Part shown: one piece after another, positions 979 through 63,599 of the stretch
How positions within the stretch are numbered: the first letter of the stretch is position 1
Layout: the number at the start of each line of letters is the position of its first letter
From: Phallusia mammillata
Taxonomy: Eukaryota
DNA length: 64,000 bases
Reading direction: 5' to 3'
Assembly (NCBI GenBank): GCA_965637545.1
Contig: OZ281501.1
Span: 18,662,001-18,726,000, forward strand
Program-made: the position numbers and the translations under genes
The notes under the pieces: model-generated
The model's input: only the letters and a program-made list of their open reading frames with translations
What the model was told of the DNA's origin: nothing
Database searches by the model: none

Positions 979-28082
<27,104 letters not shown>

Positions 28083-39400: not shown

Positions 39401-41709
39401 GTCTGGTTTCAAATAAAATTAACCCAACAGTAGCAGTTTTTCGGTGATTACTGTTTTTAATATCAATATAATCCAAAGACCAGTGTATAAAACCCAAGGC
39501 CAAACAGAACCAACCGTTGTTAAATATAAAAAAACAAGTATTTACCATGTTAGGTGTCGATGTGTATAAAAATTTAGGCAATTCTCCACATCACTGCGTA
39601 TTATAAGTTCCTGTTATGTTGATAAGCTATCAAATTTATGACTTAATGATGACTCGATACCTGAGAATCATATCACGATTTTGACGGAAGCTTTAGCGGA
39701 TTACTAAACGATTCTGAGTATTGACTGAGTGTTATCTGTGTGCAGTTATGCGTAGTTTATGTTGTGGTTTAGCATAGGAATTCGATTCGATGGTAGCTTT
39801 ACTGTCGTCATTGTCATTTTTGGGATCCTTAACCGACTTCAATGCCCTGATATACGAATTTAGGTTTTTAAACTGTTGTGAGCGCCCCCATAATTTCAGA
39901 CCAATTCTGAATTCTCCCTTTTTTATGAATGTAAATGTGTCTTTGCATATGCATATGTTTTTTTTCCGTTTCAAGGGCTTTTTATGTATTAATTGGTGGG
40001 CACGAGGTCAAGAATTTCGTGGCTACCGTGATTACATAAGTACTTACATAAGTGAAATAAACGCATTTTAGTCTCTAGATTTTTAAGCACACTTTTTACC
40101 TTTCTCGTATTTCTTGCAACGATCTTTGTAAGTTAAGGTTACGTGTCGGTAAACTTTTAAGACTGACATTAAACATCTTACTGAAGGCGGTCTTTGTTAA
40201 ATTTTCTCTGTTGTGTATCTAGGTTTATTATTGAGAATTGCCGATGCAGCGAGCTATATCCAAGTTGTAAAACCTTTAAAGCGGATACGATAGAGCAACC
40301 TTTGTCCCCCTAATCCAATTATATTACCAATGACGCAAGTGTGACGTCAAAAGTCAATTAACTAAGGGAACTTGCAACCTTTAATTTTTAACAAATTGAT
40401 TGCGGTTTGGTAAAGGGATAAAAAAGTATTGTGGTCAAGCATTTTTTGACAAAAGGAAGCGTAAGATAGCCTCTTTTAATGTCACAAAATGTGTTTGTTT
40501 GTTGATGAAGTTGCGTTTCAATGCTTGTTTCCCACGTGTTTGTTTGCCGCACTAACATGTTTGGAACATTACTTGACTGAGGTAAACACGGCGGTTATAC
40601 TGTGGTGTTTTTACAAGAATTGCAGTCTACTTTTACACCTGCCGTTACGTGCTTGTACAAGTCGTGTTTCCACGAACAAGCTGCTGCCATGTGGGCAGTT
40701 TCTTTGAATTTGGACGCCCACGTAATGATAGACTGAAGATCGCCAATGTCGTGTAAATCTGGGTTTATAAAACGGTTGACAATTTAAATTTGTTTGCTGT
40801 TTTGAGAAACTTTGGTTTTGTACTTCCTGCTCACACTAAACTCACTTGTTTAACAATAACCTGATCTGAATTATTCACACTGCAAAGCAGAAATTTATAC
40901 GAATTTTTATGGGTGTGAGGATTAATGATATTGGTATTAATTAATTTCTTATGGATCTAACATTTCGCAACACCTGCGCATGGTAGCAATGTCACGTAAT
41001 ACCAATAAAACGTTGTTATTAAATCACCATATGGTTCGATAACACTGGCTGAAAAGTTGCAGACGTGTTCTCAAATAGCTGAAAACTCATGTGGTTCCTA
41101 TATTAAGATAAAAAATAGGTAGGTTATGTAACCGCTGCCAAGTAAATAGTCTCCATATTGTATAACCACAGTTTTCGAACAACTGAAATTGCAGCTTTCG
41201 CGCCTACGCAAGTTGCTTTAAATAACTCTAAAGGGGTCATTACCGTGGCCCACAAGCTTTCGAAGCAATTTATTTTTGTCCTATTTGCTGTTCTCGAAAT
41301 CTGTTAATCTGTACAAATTTTCCTCGTTTTCACGCACGATTCAAAGTTTGATATTGTCTCGTTTCGCACGCAATTTAGCAGATGGCAAGTCGATCAACAA
41401 GATCTTCGCGACATTTAGTACAAAAAGCGCCTTTAGCACATGGGGTTACCGACCCTTGATAACATATAGCAATGACGTACTCACTTGTCCACGGCAGTAC
41501 GAAAAGCGTGTATTGCTTTTTAAAAACGTGTCACAAATACAATCTCACAATGCCAACATAAAAAGAAATGATCAATTACAAAAGCTGTTTTAAAAAAAAG
41601 TAAATTCAAGCCACTCAGTGTTTCCGACTTACAATTGTAAAAGTTTATTGCAAAGATCGGTGTTGAATGTTTGTTGATTATGCTAGGGCAGTATAAGACC
41701 GTCACTCAC

Positions 41710-42925
41710 AAGAGAATTCCATAAACCGGGTGCTACGCTTCTTAGTTTTTTCGGATTTTTCACCTCCACATAGCCCCCTTCAATCAAGTTTTCGAGCAAC
41801 GCGATGATAAAATTCTCTTTCATGTTCATGTTTTGCATCCGACGAAACATAGTGATTACGTCAATCTCAGCTCTTCGCTTTCGTACATTGGTTTTACAAT
41901 CTAAAAGTTCGGGATCAATGCTTGCGTCGGAAGCCTCTTCTCTAGAATACGAAAATAAATGAATCTCGTTCTTTTGTTTTAATAAAAATATAATTGTCCA
42001 GATGTCGCGCTTTATAGGAAGAAATATGTCTATACTTTGGTGACATTATCTGTAGGTAAACATAATTTTATACCATGGTAAATCTTTGATCCAAATGAGC
42101 TTGCAGAGAAAAGTTTTTTGTATTGATTTTTGCCATATCACGAAATTTTGTTGTTTAAAATTATTGACGCATTAGTGCATATATCGTACGTCAATGATCT
42201 ACACCTCAATGAGCACGACGTTAAAAACAGTTTAATAGAGTTATTCTTCCAGAACTTCCATGTAAACACAATTGACTTTTTTAGAGCGGTTTTGCTTGTA
42301 ACGGTTGTAAGTGTTTTAGAATCTGAGTCAGCTTTTGTTTTTCGACAAATTGGTGTTAATAATCGTCCCTGGTTATTTACTGTTATCGATAACAACTTGT
42401 TAATCGTTGCAATTGCTCACCGTGTAGCCGCTCGTTTCCGTGATTCATCGTAAGAAATGTCATGCAACCGCAAATCCTTGTCTGCGCTGTGCTGCATCAG
42501 TCGTGAAACCTGAACAAAAACTTAATTAGTAATTTTAAATTTTTGTTTGACTTTGCTACACGGCTTGGGTAATTAAAAATTACTCTTAAAATAGGTAAAA
42601 CTGCGAGGAAGTTGATTTCCCCGTATGTTGTGAAAAATTTATCAAAAAAGCATCTACGTATTTTTTGACACCGGTTTTCCGTTACGATCGTAAAACGCGA
42701 TAAGAGATTAAAACGTGAAATAACGTCACAGATACATTTAAACTCCGTAAGTTTCGAGCTGCGCTTGCGTGGGCGTTCGCCTCGATTTCGTAGGTTGTAG
42801 ATTAATTCCCGGATAAAACAAGTACAACTTACCAGTATCGGCCGATCTGACGCGTTTGAGCTGTCAATAGCGTTGACGGCGATGTGTATGCAAAGCAAAA
42901 CTACGACTTGATTCCGAACGGCCAT
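41710..42925 (-). CDS. Small secreted prepropeptide-like protein (gene P1); 3' end unresolved
   Basis: Exons 42833-42925 (ATG, hydrophobic leader MAVRNQVVVLLCIHIAVNA, donor gtaagt), 42421-42509 (ttttgttcag / gtgagc) and 41710-41941 (ttttcgtattctag / gtgagt) join in phase 0 then phase 2 into an open 138-codon frame containing RKR, RKRR, RR and KK sites. Confidence 0.65.
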
Positions 42926-45036
42926 GGTTAACAGAAATAAACGTGCTTGTTCGTGCCTAATCAGCTCGAATCAACTGTGGAATTCGCTATCGAATATTGT
43001 TGTGGTCGTTAGGTCCAAGCCATGGTCCCTTTAAATGATTCCATGTTTGTTCTGCGCGGGGGATTTTAACATTTGTCCACTCAACCGATCCGTTTCCTGG
43101 TCGACATTTATCCTTTTTAATTACAGTTTAATTCTTGAAATTCCAACCCAACAAACGTCTGGTAAGGTGGCTATCGATTTCTTCAAGGGGTGCTATGCAC
43201 ACTGTTTCACGAACGCCTTTGTACTTTAACATTTATATTTCATTTAAAATTTGAACAAGGAAGTGATTTCATATACCCAACTTCCTTTGTTTTGAAGGCC
43301 GTCATTGATCGGTAAATCAGATGCCTGTAATCTTAGCATCTGTTCCCTACATGCGTGGATTGAACAGGGAGGGGCTCCCGGACTAGGTGTTTGTGATCCC
43401 CGAAATGGTTTCTTTGAGGCTGTTCTCATTACAAACAAATAGCCTTGAGTGTTTGGCGAAGGCCGAAAACACCAACAATCGCTGACACACCACTTCACAC
43501 GCATTCGAATCATAATATATAAACACGACTGTTCTAACGTGCTCTGCTAATGAGATGAGCGACACTTTCTCAAAAAGCAAAAAGTAAATTTTATTGTGAT
43601 TCTGCGATAAAATTAATGTTTCTAGAATTGGCCGATGGATGTTTACATCAAGATATGAGCGGTTTGAGTTGTAATCGCTAACACATTCCGAAAAGAGTTT
43701 GCGTACGTGCGAGGACTTGGAATATTGTGTGGTTTCTCCTACACCCACATGCGTTGGGCGCGTGTTTAGGGTTGAAACAGGCATGTCAGCGAAAAATGTG
43801 CTCTCAAAGAAAGGTTCTACCGCATTGCGTATGCATTGGCGTAATATTTCAACTATGAGATGGCAAAAATTATTTCAAACAAATTTGCCGGCGCAAAAAT
43901 AAACGTTGAATTATGCACGTCGGTGGTTGTTAGCCTCACGCACGAACGAAATTGCAAAATTGCTGCGATCGAGTACAGAAATGAACGCCGCGTGAAAGAA
44001 TTTTCCGATAATTTTAAATGTCGGCATTTTGTGACCAAACATATCGCCTGTTCTTTCGCGCGCATGACGTTCACAGGATCTAGTGTTTCGTGAAGATAAT
44101 GGTTTGCGGCACTTTACGTAAAGTGCGTACAGGGCCCGTAAAATTTCCCAGTATGAATTACGTTTAACATAAAATGGGGATTAGAAATGTTTCGGGAAAT
44201 TTTAAATGTCGTCTTTATTATATTGAACAGCAATTGTATTTAACAACATCGATAACATTTACGCAAACGCACTGTCACGCAATGACGCATAAAGCTTTTC
44301 AAATTTTGTATCTTGTCTCCAATCCATTTGCATCTGCAGTCAATTTAAAAGTAAAATTCCCAAATCAGATAAAAAACATTTATGCCGGTAAAACTTTTTC
44401 GATGGACCTTTTGAAAAAGTTGATGTATATATACCTAACCAGCAACATAGACTTTAGTATTCGCTGCTCAGTGAGCATGAGCTAAACCCAGTGAACATTA
44501 GAAAAATTGAAACCAAAGTGCTTTTTTTCGCGTTTGTAGGCATTTTATAAGATTGTCGATAAACGTTTTTAGTGAAACATATTTGTGAGGATTGTAAACG
44601 TGGCCCTACTAGGTAAAAGTATTTTTGCTTACTGAAGAAAGGCGGATACAGCTTTTTAATTTTTATTGCTACTTGTGGTGATTGTTTTGTATTTTTTGGT
44701 TTTACTGATTAATTATGTCTTTTTTCCAGCCAAACACGAACAACATTGTTGCTGAGTTTGTCGTTGCGACCATATCTTTTCATTTATGATGATCATGATT
44801 TCACGATCAATTTATGCCACTAGGTCGCGCTTGAAGTCCAACCATGTTTTTACTATAGCATGGCCCGTGAGCTCTATACATAACCACAATTTCTTCAATG
44901 GTAAATCACATCGTCATTATTTTATATAGATCGCGATAGAGTTTGTTTTAATTGGTCATACCTCGCATACGAAAGGTCTTTTAAATTCACGTTCAAATTT
45001 GAATTATCTATTAATTTTGTGGAGGTCATTTTCAAG

Positions 45037-52969: not shown

Positions 52970-55900
52970 TTAACATTTGGTTAACTTCTTCATGGCGATG
53001 TTAACGAACAGAGTCGCTGGGTTGATGACTTGACACCCGTGTGTTTCCAAATGTACATGGCGATAGCCTGAAAAGAAGAAAAACAATTGTCGCGGTAAAT
53101 TATGAAACACCTTTTGGGTTATATGACATAAGTATGACGAGCAATGCGGTACAACTCTAGTAGTGTTAGCGGCGTCGGCATTTAGTCATGCAACAGTGAC
53201 AAAGAAAATTGGTTAGACTAGAGCTTTTTGTCCATGAGTCATACTTCAACTGGGTGTTATTGACGATTAAATGTCGTTTACTACACAAATACTTTGGTTT
53301 CAGTTCGTTTGAGTTTCTTTTACCTCTACTGATACTATCAATAGGCACAATGTATGACCCCACTAGGTCGTCGTCGCCGTATGTGTCCTTGTCTAGCACT
53401 TTAAACTCCACAAACGCCAGTTCTGGTACTAACACTTTGAACTTAAACGGGTCTTCATTCACCCAGCTGGGGTTAAATCCGTTGTTGCTCACAACTTTGG
53501 TCTTTTGCGTTTGCTTTTAGGAAAAATAACATTGTTGAAGTCTGTGCTAAACTACACAGTAATACCAAGATAAAGGTTAACCAAAATCTTACAATGATAT
53601 TTTCAGTACATGTGCTTCGTATTTTTTAATTAAATGTGCTTCATTTTCAGACATATGTTGCCCCGTACCAATTGCCTTAAAGACTTGTGGACACGTGGTG
53701 CTTATGGTAATTAAGTAAGCTGTAATTGTTTCAAATGAAATCCCCTGAACTTAAGAGCGTTAATTTAATGCTCTCTCGGCATTGTGTCGCTCTGCTACGA
53801 GCCCCCACCCACGCAGAGGGCCGGCCACTTTTCGGCTCTTAAGAAGAACTTTCCGGCCGGCGCCCTTCAATAATTGCCGAACTGAATGATATTAACGTAC
53901 GTTGTCTACGTCACAGCCCAGTATGGAGACCACCACGTAGGGATCGACAACGTCCGAAGACTTTGAAGTTTTGGGTTTGGGCAGCTGCTGTGCCGTGATT
54001 ATCTGAAAAAATATTATTTTTGTTAGTGTTGCGATTCGGAGAACTTGAGATCCGAACAGAGTCAAGACGTCATACCCTAATAGTGATCTCCACGGGATTT
54101 ATGTTGTCGGAGGACTCGCTAACGTCATACGGATTAAAATTTCCCTCCAGAAGCAGTTTGGGTTTTAAGACGTAACCACATCCTCCATTGGTTCGGAACT
54201 TGCACTGATTCATGTATGTTTCACTTTCTTCGGTCTGATAGTTCAGAGCAACTGCAAAATACCGACCACGTGGTTAACACGGAATAAATAGTCTACATGG
54301 CAATATGGACGTGGTGCACTGTCAATCAAATGCCGATCAGAGTGCATACGATGTGTTGTAGTAAGTTTGGAATGTGTGGCTTCTTATTGCCACTAAGTGA
54401 TATACCATGTTGGATAATCTATAGAAAGACAAATGTCATTCACCGTTCGGTGACCCCGTGGACTTATGTTAACATGGGAGTTTTTCGGGATGTCGACGAT
54501 CCACTTGGCAGTCTTGTTACTTTAGGAGGTCAAAAGGTTGGTGGTTCCCAAGCAGCAAAGCATGATGTGACTAATGCTACGTTGTGGTCTACAGATTAAT
54601 TAACGCGAACTTACCAATTTGGCAACCAACATTCCACAAAGCCAGTGGGCTGTAGTTGCTTGAATTTGTCCGCGATCCTTTGGGGTAAATTCGAACCAAT
54701 TGCCATCTGTTGTGTTTTACGAAATCATCGGGCTAAACATAATTTTTAGTTATGTATCAACGTATACTAGCCACGTATGTTGTCTTACAAGGTTTACCTG
54801 TGACATAATTAAGCTTTCTGCCTTGTCCTCGTTTAACGACGAAATTTGTTTATAACACGAGTTTGCATGGGCGTCGTCAAATCCTTTGAAATGTCGACTT
54901 TGCGCGTAAACGACGCATCGCGAAAGTGCAGACGAAAGTTTGATTTTTTTCTGAAAACAAACAACAAGTTATTGTAACAGCATCAAGATAATAAATGATA
55001 GCAAGCTGCAGATGGTGCACAACAACAAGGTATTTACAATTTCCGACACAAGCCAGTTTACTATAAAGTGTGCCCTAGGTCAAGACACGTAAATCTGTTT
55101 GATCATATAATCCTAAAATATGATCTAAAAAACGAAAACAACAAAATATCTCAAGCCGACATATTTCTGATACAATCAATGATAACGCCACTAGCTTGGC
55201 GCGTTTGTTGTCGCTCCTGAACTGAGCGTGCAATCAAAATCCGCCATTTTCTTGGAGCTTCTTCAAGTAACAAAAATGGCGCCTTTAACGATATAGAACG
55301 GTCGGAAGCCTATAATTTAGTTACTGAAAAAATTGACTAGGTAAATTTCATCGTATTAGTCAGGAGACCAGGTCATAATGCAATAATTGAACCAATGTTG
55401 TATAGTGCAAAAATCTTGATCGTATTATTTTCCACTTTTCCATGTTTTTAAAATACGGCATGTGGTCAAAGGCAGCTATAGTTGTTTGGCTTTTGGATAA
55501 TCTAAATCGATAATTTGCTATGAAGGAAACCGAATGCAATTACACAATCGTTACATTGCAGCATTCAGTGAAGTAAAGCAGCACATTTACAAAACTTCTG
55601 TTCATTTTTCGCCCCCGCAACCCGCAATTGGTTTGATATTTATTGTTGTCGGTATTGAAATTACAACTAGCCCCTTCCCCCTCCACTGCATCAAATTGAC
55701 TCTAATACCGTTTGTCACGGTTTTTTGAATGCCGCGGTTAGCGACTACTGACACGACTGGAAATTTCTCCGACTTAATTTTCCCCAGCAGCAATTGTGGT
55801 ACATGTTTTTCAGCGAAATGTCGATTTGCATGAGTTGCAACCCTGGCCTTCATACAAACAACTGACTTTCTGTTACTCTAGGTCACATTTTGAGCTCAAT

Positions 55901-61900: not shown

Positions 61901-63599
61901 AGGCCCGTGTCTAGCAGCCAAGCCCGTGTCTAGCAGCCAAGCCCGTGTCTAGCAGCCAAGCCCGTACACAGTTTCCTATGTCTGAGACAACTATTTTCTG
62001 TTTAGTGAACCTAAAATTTATACCTGATGCTAAATAAAAGTCGAGAGCCGCTTCAATATGCCAGGAAACTAGAGGCTTTGAATTTACCTTGGCGCTAAGT
62101 TTAAGGTCAGCGTCGCAGTAGGACTTGTACAGCCTTTCTATCTCCGGTCTCCACGAAATCTTTTGGAAAAAGTCGCAGAATTCCGGAAAGTTAAGACTCC
62201 CGTCCCCGGAAACGTCGCACTCCTGTGAATAAAATAAGTCGCGAAAATTACAGTTTGAAACAATTTGTAAATTCGCCATCACGACGCCTGAGAACTGTTC
62301 GACCAAGTTCGAACGATCAACTGTATTTAAACACACACTTTACGGTTTGGGAAACTTTAGACAATAAACATGCAAGTCAATACGAATCAGCACGGCATTT
62401 TGACGTCTCCACAATTCTTATGTCATTTTAAAAGCACTTAAATTAGGCTGCGAATTGTATATTGGTGGGTAAAATGACATATCTTATAAATTTTTCCTTT
62501 TTTATCAAATCAAACCCTTTAGAAAAGCACTTTAAACCTAGTATCAGGTCGTTTAGTTCTCTTGAATTAACTTTTCGTGGCCTTATTTAACAGTAGACGC
62601 CAAAGACGCTTTAGAGGCGTTGTACCGATTTGCGACAATAAGGGTCAGGTGTGCATAACGCTCACAAGAGCGCCAACGTCTTGTATGCAAAGTCGTGCAC
62701 GCAGCTTGCGTAGATGCAGGGCGGCATGTTTGGGAGAAAAAAAACGTCGAAGGTGAAGAGCGAACCGGTTTTAGAATTACACAACTAGTTCAATAAAGCG
62801 CCAGTTATATAAGTAGGTATTGCATCAGTTATAACGACGGTTTCCGTTTGCCACCGGCAAAAAAGTCGGATCAAACCAACTATCTTGTTTACCATCGACA
62901 CAGATTATATATTGCGGTAGGCAAGGATGGCAGTACGGTACGGTACCATTGCGTTGACCGTACCTCGTTACGAAGAGCGTACCATACTGTACCACCGTAC
63001 CGTACAAAACGTCAAAAATGAGAACGCACCGTACCGTACTTGAGGTACGGTACTCACATTTGTATCGTACCTTCAAATAAAACAATCGGAATCAGGCGGC
63101 GCTTAAAGGAAGGCTATCCCAAAAAGCTTTACAAGATTTAATAACTTTATTTAACTAATTTCAGAATAAATTACAAATGCCGAGTTAATCTCTGTTATTG
63201 TCATGTGCGCGTTTTGATGATAGGCCTACAGTGCGTGTAACTCAATTTGCATAGCGGTCAGCCAGTAAGCACAAAATATTAAGCAGTGACGTTATCAACT
63301 TTTCTAACCACCTTTTGGTACTGTGAAATGGTGATCAAATCATGTCACAAACTCATGTCATTTGTTTGTGTGTTTGGGTTGGGATTTGTGAGTTATTTTT
63401 GCCATATTTGTTTAATAAACCTTTCTTGGCGCAGGGTAGGCCTAAATACTATATGGTGTTGGTGTCTTTAATCGTTTGGTAGTCGGCTTGTGTCTATTTT
63501 ACATGAATCTCTTGTGGTGAAAATACTTACATTCAGTATCTTTTTGATGTAGGACGACGTCGCTTCAAAGTTCAGCTTGTCCAAAAGTTTTTTGATTTC
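52970..63599 (-). CDS. PLCD: Phosphoinositide phospholipase C, delta type (EF hands, X, Y, C2; PH domain outside the window)
   Basis: Exons in transcription order: 63531-63599, 62088-62222, 58866-59051, 58629-58741, 57532-57676, 57388-57468, 57141-57219, 56659-56798, 54798-54950, 54615-54732, 54076-54251, 53901-54002, 53324-53513, 52970-53067(TAA). Catalytic motifs [44 protein letters not shown] are intact; the protein stops right after C2 (GYRHVHL...[13 protein letters not shown]), as delta isoforms do. Confidence 0.93.
61903..61965. repeat. 19-bp tandem repeat, 3.3 copies
   Basis: GCCCGTGTCTAGCAGCCAA x3 followed by GCCCGT. Confidence 0.95.
62920..63075. repeat. GTACGGTAC/GTACCGTAC-rich quasi-palindromic repeat, probable MITE remnant
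   Basis: Clustered CCGTAC/GTACGG motifs in both orientations; no matching TIR pair or TSD found. Confidence 0.45.

Follow-up and report, generated by a model that had tools for sequence, protein, structure and literature searches.

A conserved spliced gene of Phallusia mammillata that may encode a secreted pro-protein with a cysteine-free 62-residue mini-domain

Here we describe P1, an unannotated three-exon gene on the minus strand of a 64,000-nucleotide stretch of the Phallusia mammillata genome (contig OZ281501.1, positions 18,662,001 to 18,726,000; hereafter the window, from whose first nucleotide positions are counted). The explanation that we favour, to which we assign a probability of roughly 0.55, is that P1 encodes an orphan secreted pro-protein from which furin-type cleavage frees a cysteine-free mini-domain of 62 residues that serves as an extracellular signal and, as part of the same explanation and within the same probability, that this product does not act as a helical peptide of 29-40 residues of the class-B type. 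According to our model, the signal peptide of exon 1 would take the pre-pro-protein into the secretory pathway, and a furin-type convertase would remove the acidic, fast-evolving pro-region (from the last part of exon 1 through exon 2 into the beginning of exon 3) by cutting at an R-X-K/R-R site. The whole 62-residue block would thereby be released and would fold into a small four-helix domain, a mini-protein that most likely would signal extracellularly through some receptor.

The exons of P1 join in frame via GT/AG splice sites (Table 1) and together predict a pre-pro-protein of approximately 146 residues; exon 2 ends after two nucleotides of a codon (phase 2) at the donor GTGAGC. The three translated pieces that the initial annotation had quoted when it proposed a hidden spliced gene at this position were reproduced exactly. 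P1 lies between the last exon of the sodium-channel gene Nav1, which is on the plus strand and ends at about position 28082, and a minus-strand gene at 53-62 kb. It is a single-copy gene, as a search of its own genome with a profile of the C-terminal block found no second copy, and no RNA families or repeats were found at the locus. Throughout, searches and folding were carried out on each exon separately or on the C-terminal block.

Table 1. Coordinates of the predicted features of P1 in the window and of its counterpart on the contig L002.
Feature	Sequence	Position	Strand	Remarks
Exon 1	Window	42833..42925	-	31 codons; start context aaccATGg; ends in phase 0
Intron 1	Window	42510..42832	-	323 nt; donor GTAAGT (42832-42827), acceptor ttgttcAG; predicted from sequence
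Exon 2	Window	42421..42509	-	89 nt; polar/acidic spacer with RKR site; starts in phase 0
Intron 2	Window	41942..42420	-	479 nt; GTGAGC ... tattctAG; phase conserved in L002
Exon 3	Window	41683..41941	-	Completes a codon with 1 nt, followed by 85 codons and TAG
Start of exon 3	Window	41884..41941	-	End of acidic pro-region; poorly conserved
R-K-R-R furin/prohormone-convertase-type site	Window	41872..41883	-	R-X-K/R-R; L002 has R-T-K-R at the same place
C-terminal block	Window	41686..41871	-	62 residues without Cys; predicted mature product
Stop codon TAG	Window	41683..41685	-	Stop of L002 one residue earlier
AATAAA polyadenylation-signal consensus	Window	41644..41649	-	34 nt past the stop; from sequence
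First exon	L002	24-110		MA followed by a hydrophobic run; ends in phase 0 at GTAAAC
Internal exon	L002	282-376		95 nt; donor GTGAGT two bases into a codon
Last-exon acceptor	L002	646-647		ttttAG; one base left to complete the codon

The evidence that P1 is a gene comes from a second species. An exhaustive phmmer search of 1.84 billion protein representatives returned only one relative, P0001, a protein of 76 residues (E 1e-21, 64% identity) called on a 4431-nt genomic Logan contig from run DRR090687, here termed L002. The match corresponds to the part of exon 3 past the basic site and opens with 11 identical residues directly after that site; 40 of the 60 residues of the conserved stretch are identical, and this stretch runs up to a stop that differs in position by one residue. 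For these 60 codons we obtained a pN of 0.19 and a saturated pS of 0.87. The differences fall 17, 9 and 35 times on the first, second and third codon positions, respectively, so that third positions account for 35 of the 61 differences, and the sense frame is the only one among the six frames of the block that is free of stops in both species. Given that pS is saturated while pN is so low, on this sequence comparison the C-terminal block is coding exon sequence that purifying selection has maintained over a deep divergence.

This comparison also bears on the 3' end of the gene. The lower limit of 41710 that had been proposed for P1 adjoins an internal GTGAGT (41709-41704), which we considered as a donor and rejected: L002 has no GT at this place, so that there is no conserved donor, and the reading frame is conserved past it. 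As this GTGAGT is not a donor, positions 41633-41682, for which a second peptide had been suggested, fall in the 3' UTR.

In antisense, an ORF of some 50 codons lies over the block (window 41804-41962, plus strand; L002 636-788, minus strand), with 34/59 identity between the species in that frame. Within the block this frame is interrupted by a single stop in each species, and its third codon position coincides with that of the sense frame; as read from the two sequences, it is thus a mirror effect of the constraint on the sense strand and not a second gene.

The upstream exons were compared by their layout. With strict splice motifs, enumeration gave three models per species that reach exon 3, and the sole architecture common to P1 and L002 has three exons, a hydrophobic start with the residues MA, and introns in phases 0 and 2. 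In exons 1 and 2, no similarity of sequence could be detected between the two species (BLASTP for exon 2), and nothing besides the block was found to be alike between the window and the 4.4-kb L002 contig by blastn or by tblastn of all open pieces. The signal peptide therefore rests on position, phase and hydrophobicity. Such dissimilarity fits a signal peptide followed by a fast-evolving spacer, but it leaves the upstream part of the model a prediction. The earlier proposal of a hidden spliced gene is thus borne out by an orthologue with the same exon layout and by purifying selection on the last exon.

Residues 1-19 of exon 1 resemble a cleavable signal peptide, with an Arg-containing n-region, a hydrophobic core and V-N-A before the likely cut. 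The core, of 11-14 residues, is too short for a membrane span, and its hydrophobic 9-mer ranks in the top 1.3% of the 633 ATG-started open frames in the window; by the same measure the core of L002 stands in the top 8.7%. The basic sites of the two species, RKRR in P1 and RTKR in L002, both fit R-X-K/R-R and are situated between the variable pro-region and the conserved product. The initial annotation had put forward a signal peptide followed by an acidic spacer and a polybasic site, and we regard this layout as supported, the signal peptide being a prediction from sequence. The annotation's expectation that conservation would peak on the predicted peptide holds in that conservation starts exactly past the basic site; it fails in that the conserved unit is of 60 residues, reaching to the stop, and not of 29. 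In place of the KK at residues 41-42, L002 has QK, and the block contains no Gly-basic amidation signal, both ORFs ending with a few hydrophobic residues and a stop. Given that conservation reaches the stop, that KK is not conserved and that there is no amidation signal, we take the conserved unit to be the whole block of approximately 60 residues.

AlphaFold2 predicts that the block forms a compact four-helix domain, with helices at residues 5-14, 19-32, 40-46 and 48-56 and a short beta bridge. With a two-sequence alignment the P1 block reached a pLDDT of 92.3 and a pTM of 0.76, and the L002 block, folded alone, adopted the same topology (pLDDT 93.7, pTM 0.76); these models were built from only one or two sequences. 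Searches with the model gave no specific relative: Foldseek found nothing in the PDB at E under 8, and the best hits of VIA-align in its wide search (Z 4.6) were assorted generic helical repeats. In an Atlas shape search, residues 1-41 of the block could be laid on RecX three-helix repeats (TM 0.57, rmsd 1.5-1.7 A). This is a short match of a common motif, and RecX-type and winged-helix-like proteins, in contrast to the secreted product that we propose, are intracellular.

Searches by sequence were similarly unproductive. A Pfam search at E<=10 with the three exon pieces and the blocks of both species gave La alone, at a non-significant E of 0.13, bearing in mind that matches with E above about 0.1 may be lost to the filters of HMMER. 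The single P1 sequence matched nothing among 177,635 PDB sequences (phmmer, E<=10), and the two-sequence profile gave an MCM8 winged helix (E 0.19) and ARD1 (E 5.5), both of which we take as chance. Feature-based searches of the ESM Atlas gave scores of at most 0.84, which serve as leads only, with DUF2582/DsrD at 0.81-0.83. La, the MCM8 winged helix, DUF2582/DsrD and RecX are all helix-turn-helix- or winged-helix-like, and none of these hints is significant.

Records of P1 itself were equally scarce. The word-index protein search found no match to exon 3, and the two-sequence profile returned P0001 only; as the word index missed P0001 despite a shared exact word of 12 residues, a blank from it on short queries does not equal absence. 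Exact look-up of the 55-residue ORF gave no match, so that neither the word index nor the exact ORF look-up has the spliced P1 product on record, and a literature search for the P1 motif found nothing. A run search named no RNA run that contains the stretch, and in a search of the region 40800-43400 for transcripts of P1 we found no match in four contig sets whose status as RNA is our guess, and which consist of contigs only, such that an empty result is no proof of silence. Within the searches run, the P1 gene is known from two species only.

Three other explanations of the locus depart from ours on what kind of gene, if any, P1 is. The intrinsic evidence for P1 is weak because open frames this long arise by chance: at 37% G+C, frames of the length of the P1 exons are not rare, many ORFs of 90-140 codons in the window are clearly non-coding, and we estimate from base composition that about two open frames of at least 120 codons would be expected by chance in 64 kb. 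On these grounds, and because no RNA evidence was found, P1 might be dismissed as a set of chance open frames or as a conserved non-coding element; but pN is much lower than pS, no frame other than the sense frame is open in both species and the stop lies at a conserved position, and on these sequence data the pN/pS and frame analyses bring that dismissal close to refuted. Less radically, the block could be the last exon of a different, larger gene with its true upstream exons at another place, exons 1 and 2 being chance open frames. Both the lack of detectable similarity between these exons in the two species and the empty transcript search would agree with such an arrangement, which we nevertheless consider improbable given that the same phases and layout recur in both species within 650-1000 nt, that no other match exists in L002 or upstream in the window, and that no longer protein bearing the block is present among the 1.84 billion representatives.

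The main rival to a secreted pro-protein, which we think unlikely but more probable than either of the former, is a small intracellular and perhaps nuclear protein. The basic cluster would then serve as a nuclear localisation signal and the block as a helix-turn-helix-like domain that binds nucleic acid or protein, exon 1 being misattached or devoid of a signal peptide. It is unusual for a compact domain of 62 residues to be extracellular and yet lack disulfides, and this counts against secretion, as could the basic cluster if it were a nuclear localisation signal; the absence of Cys, and hence of disulfides, favours the intracellular rival. A number of separate, weak hints suggest winged-helix or three-helix shapes, and each species has shorter alternative models that lack a signal peptide. 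Those hints, however, are all below significance (E 0.13-0.19, atlas score <0.85, Z <=4.6), no homology exists between the alternative ATG models of the two species, and a hydrophobic first exon in the right phase is found in both. The net charge of the block, read from its sequence, is approximately zero, which is atypical of DNA binders.

The initial annotation had gone further and read P1 as a precursor of a class-B1 GPCR ligand, that is, of an amphipathic helix of 29-40 residues following the KRR site and resembling glucagon/GIP, PTH or CRF/DH44. There is something to be said for this: the precursor is predicted to carry a signal peptide, followed by a spacer and a basic site, conservation begins directly past that site, all six of the residues identical to GIP are conserved in L002, and Ciona has receptors resembling the GCGR subfamily that are without a known ligand (Cardoso et al., 2020; PMC7251081). 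Nevertheless, we find it very unlikely that P1 encodes such a ligand. The profiles PF00123, PF01279 and PF00473, the search of which had been suggested as a check, gave no match at E<=10 to exon 3, to the block or to L002, and no hormone chain in the PDB was matched at E<=10 by sequence or profile. The N-terminus reads Ala-Glu-Ile and not His/Tyr-Ser/Ala-Asp/Glu-Gly; KK becomes QK in L002, the amidation signal is absent and the conserved unit has 60 residues; and for both species a compact four-helix fold is predicted, not a free helix. The stretch aligned with GIP (41874-41788) and its six identities are as had been described, but 6/29 is at chance level after allowing for multiplicity: the probability of so many ungapped identities is approximately 0.004-0.02 for a single comparison, and it becomes unremarkable because about 15 peptides from the family were tried along with a few anchor points.

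Each of the three peptide families shares part of its organisation with P1. The precursors of glucagon, GIP, secretin and PACAP have a signal peptide, a spacer, a basic site and a helical product without Cys, an order that is also predicted for P1. Mature peptides of the glucagon family start with His or Tyr, followed by residues of the Ser/Ala-Asp/Glu/Gln-Gly-Thr-Phe type, whereas after RKRR or RTKR both of our species read A-E-I-D-V-I, and in the GIP alignment it is the final Arg of the cleavage site that falls on Tyr1. P1 further differs from these precursors in having no HMM or PDB match, no C-terminal processing or amidation site, and a 60-residue four-helix domain. Given the absence of a PF00123 or PDB match, the Ala start and the folded unit of 60 residues, we do not uphold the assignment to glucagon/GIP and the secretin superfamily.

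The resemblance to PTH and PTHrP is of a similar kind. These too are small pre-pro-proteins in which a basic, furin-type site precedes a helical, Cys-free C-terminal product, and PTHrP likewise follows an R-X-K-R site. PTH and PTHrP carry an N-terminal activation motif, Ser/Ala-Val-Ser-Glu, past a Lys/Arg-Arg site; by eye, and without a family alignment, the block has A-E-I with Val-Ser missing. We presume that the A-E-I start of P1 resembles the S/A-V-S-E-I/H of PTH/PTHrP, and that the hydrophobic face does likewise: in an ungapped alignment K18, F21, I22, L25, L26 and L29 of the block fall on what we assume to be positions of the receptor-binding face. Against this, the family HMM gave no match at E<=10, P1 is short of two N-terminal residues, and its last intron precedes the site by 23 codons, whereas that of PTH/PTHrP is inside the short pro-peptide. 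PTH is not a compact domain, whereas the P1 block is predicted to be one. With no PF01279 match and no solved PTH or PTHrP chain at E<=10, the PTH-like alignment is not sustained. The CRF/DH44-like alignment fares no better: CRF, urocortin and DH44 (PF00473) also have a helical product at the C-terminus of the precursor past a basic site, but P1 matches no HMM of this family, lacks the Gly-basic amidation signal and has a longer, folded product.

Tunicates are the closest invertebrate relatives of vertebrates. A true class-B ligand in tunicates would matter, since no gene for a secretin-superfamily peptide had been reported from tunicates although Ciona has GCGR-subfamily-like receptors (Cardoso et al., 2020; PMC7251081). 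Whether tunicates have ligands of the secretin, glucagon or PTH type remains an open question (PMC7251081), which P1 does not settle. What P1 provides is a real gene that is absent from the annotation and that ORF-based tracks miss, with a product held by purifying selection across a divergence that saturates silent sites, and a very small, confidently predicted, disulfide-free domain that has no relative in the sequence and structure libraries searched. Should P1 be secreted, it would be a candidate new signalling protein; otherwise it represents a new small helical domain. Its value would thus lie mainly in annotation and in a modest lead, not in a solved evolutionary link. As speculation, to which we attach little probability, the block might be the founding member of an undescribed tunicate family of disulfide-free signalling mini-proteins released by furin or, more boldly, a very derived ligand of the PTH/secretin superfamily for the orphan GCGR/PTHR-like receptors of ascidians.

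Synteny offered a further route to relatives of P1. Positions 26997-28082 of the plus strand are the last coding exon of the Nav1 gene, which encodes the IQ/C-terminal domain and has a G+C content of 0.49, compared with about 0.37 around it. Its 361-residue ORF is 65-80% identical to vertebrate SCN proteins over the conserved first 40% and is matched, at 42-50% identity, by ORFs on long contigs of ENA assemblies, which are probably from other tunicates. Downstream of the Nav1 C-terminal exon in five other assemblies, neither tblastn nor hmmsearch --max found the P1 block within 10 kb or, in two of them, within about 18-20 kb. Transposase ORFs were seen near the last exon of Nav1 (L013 5131-7620 and 12830-13953, L012 964-1446, all on the minus strand), those of the two assemblies being of the hAT type (DUF4371/Dimer_Tnp_hAT) and of the PiggyBac type (DDE_Tnp_1_7). 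Given transposases at this place, the downstream intergenic region is unstable between these genomes, and this weakens the negative synteny result. In the window itself, a second candidate spliced gene, P2 (47053-48335), holds nothing that resembles the P1 block. Upstream of P1, positions 53166-53492 and 61911-62336 of the minus strand hold open frames that, by eye, resemble a C2 domain and an EF-hand region of a phospholipase-C-type gene.
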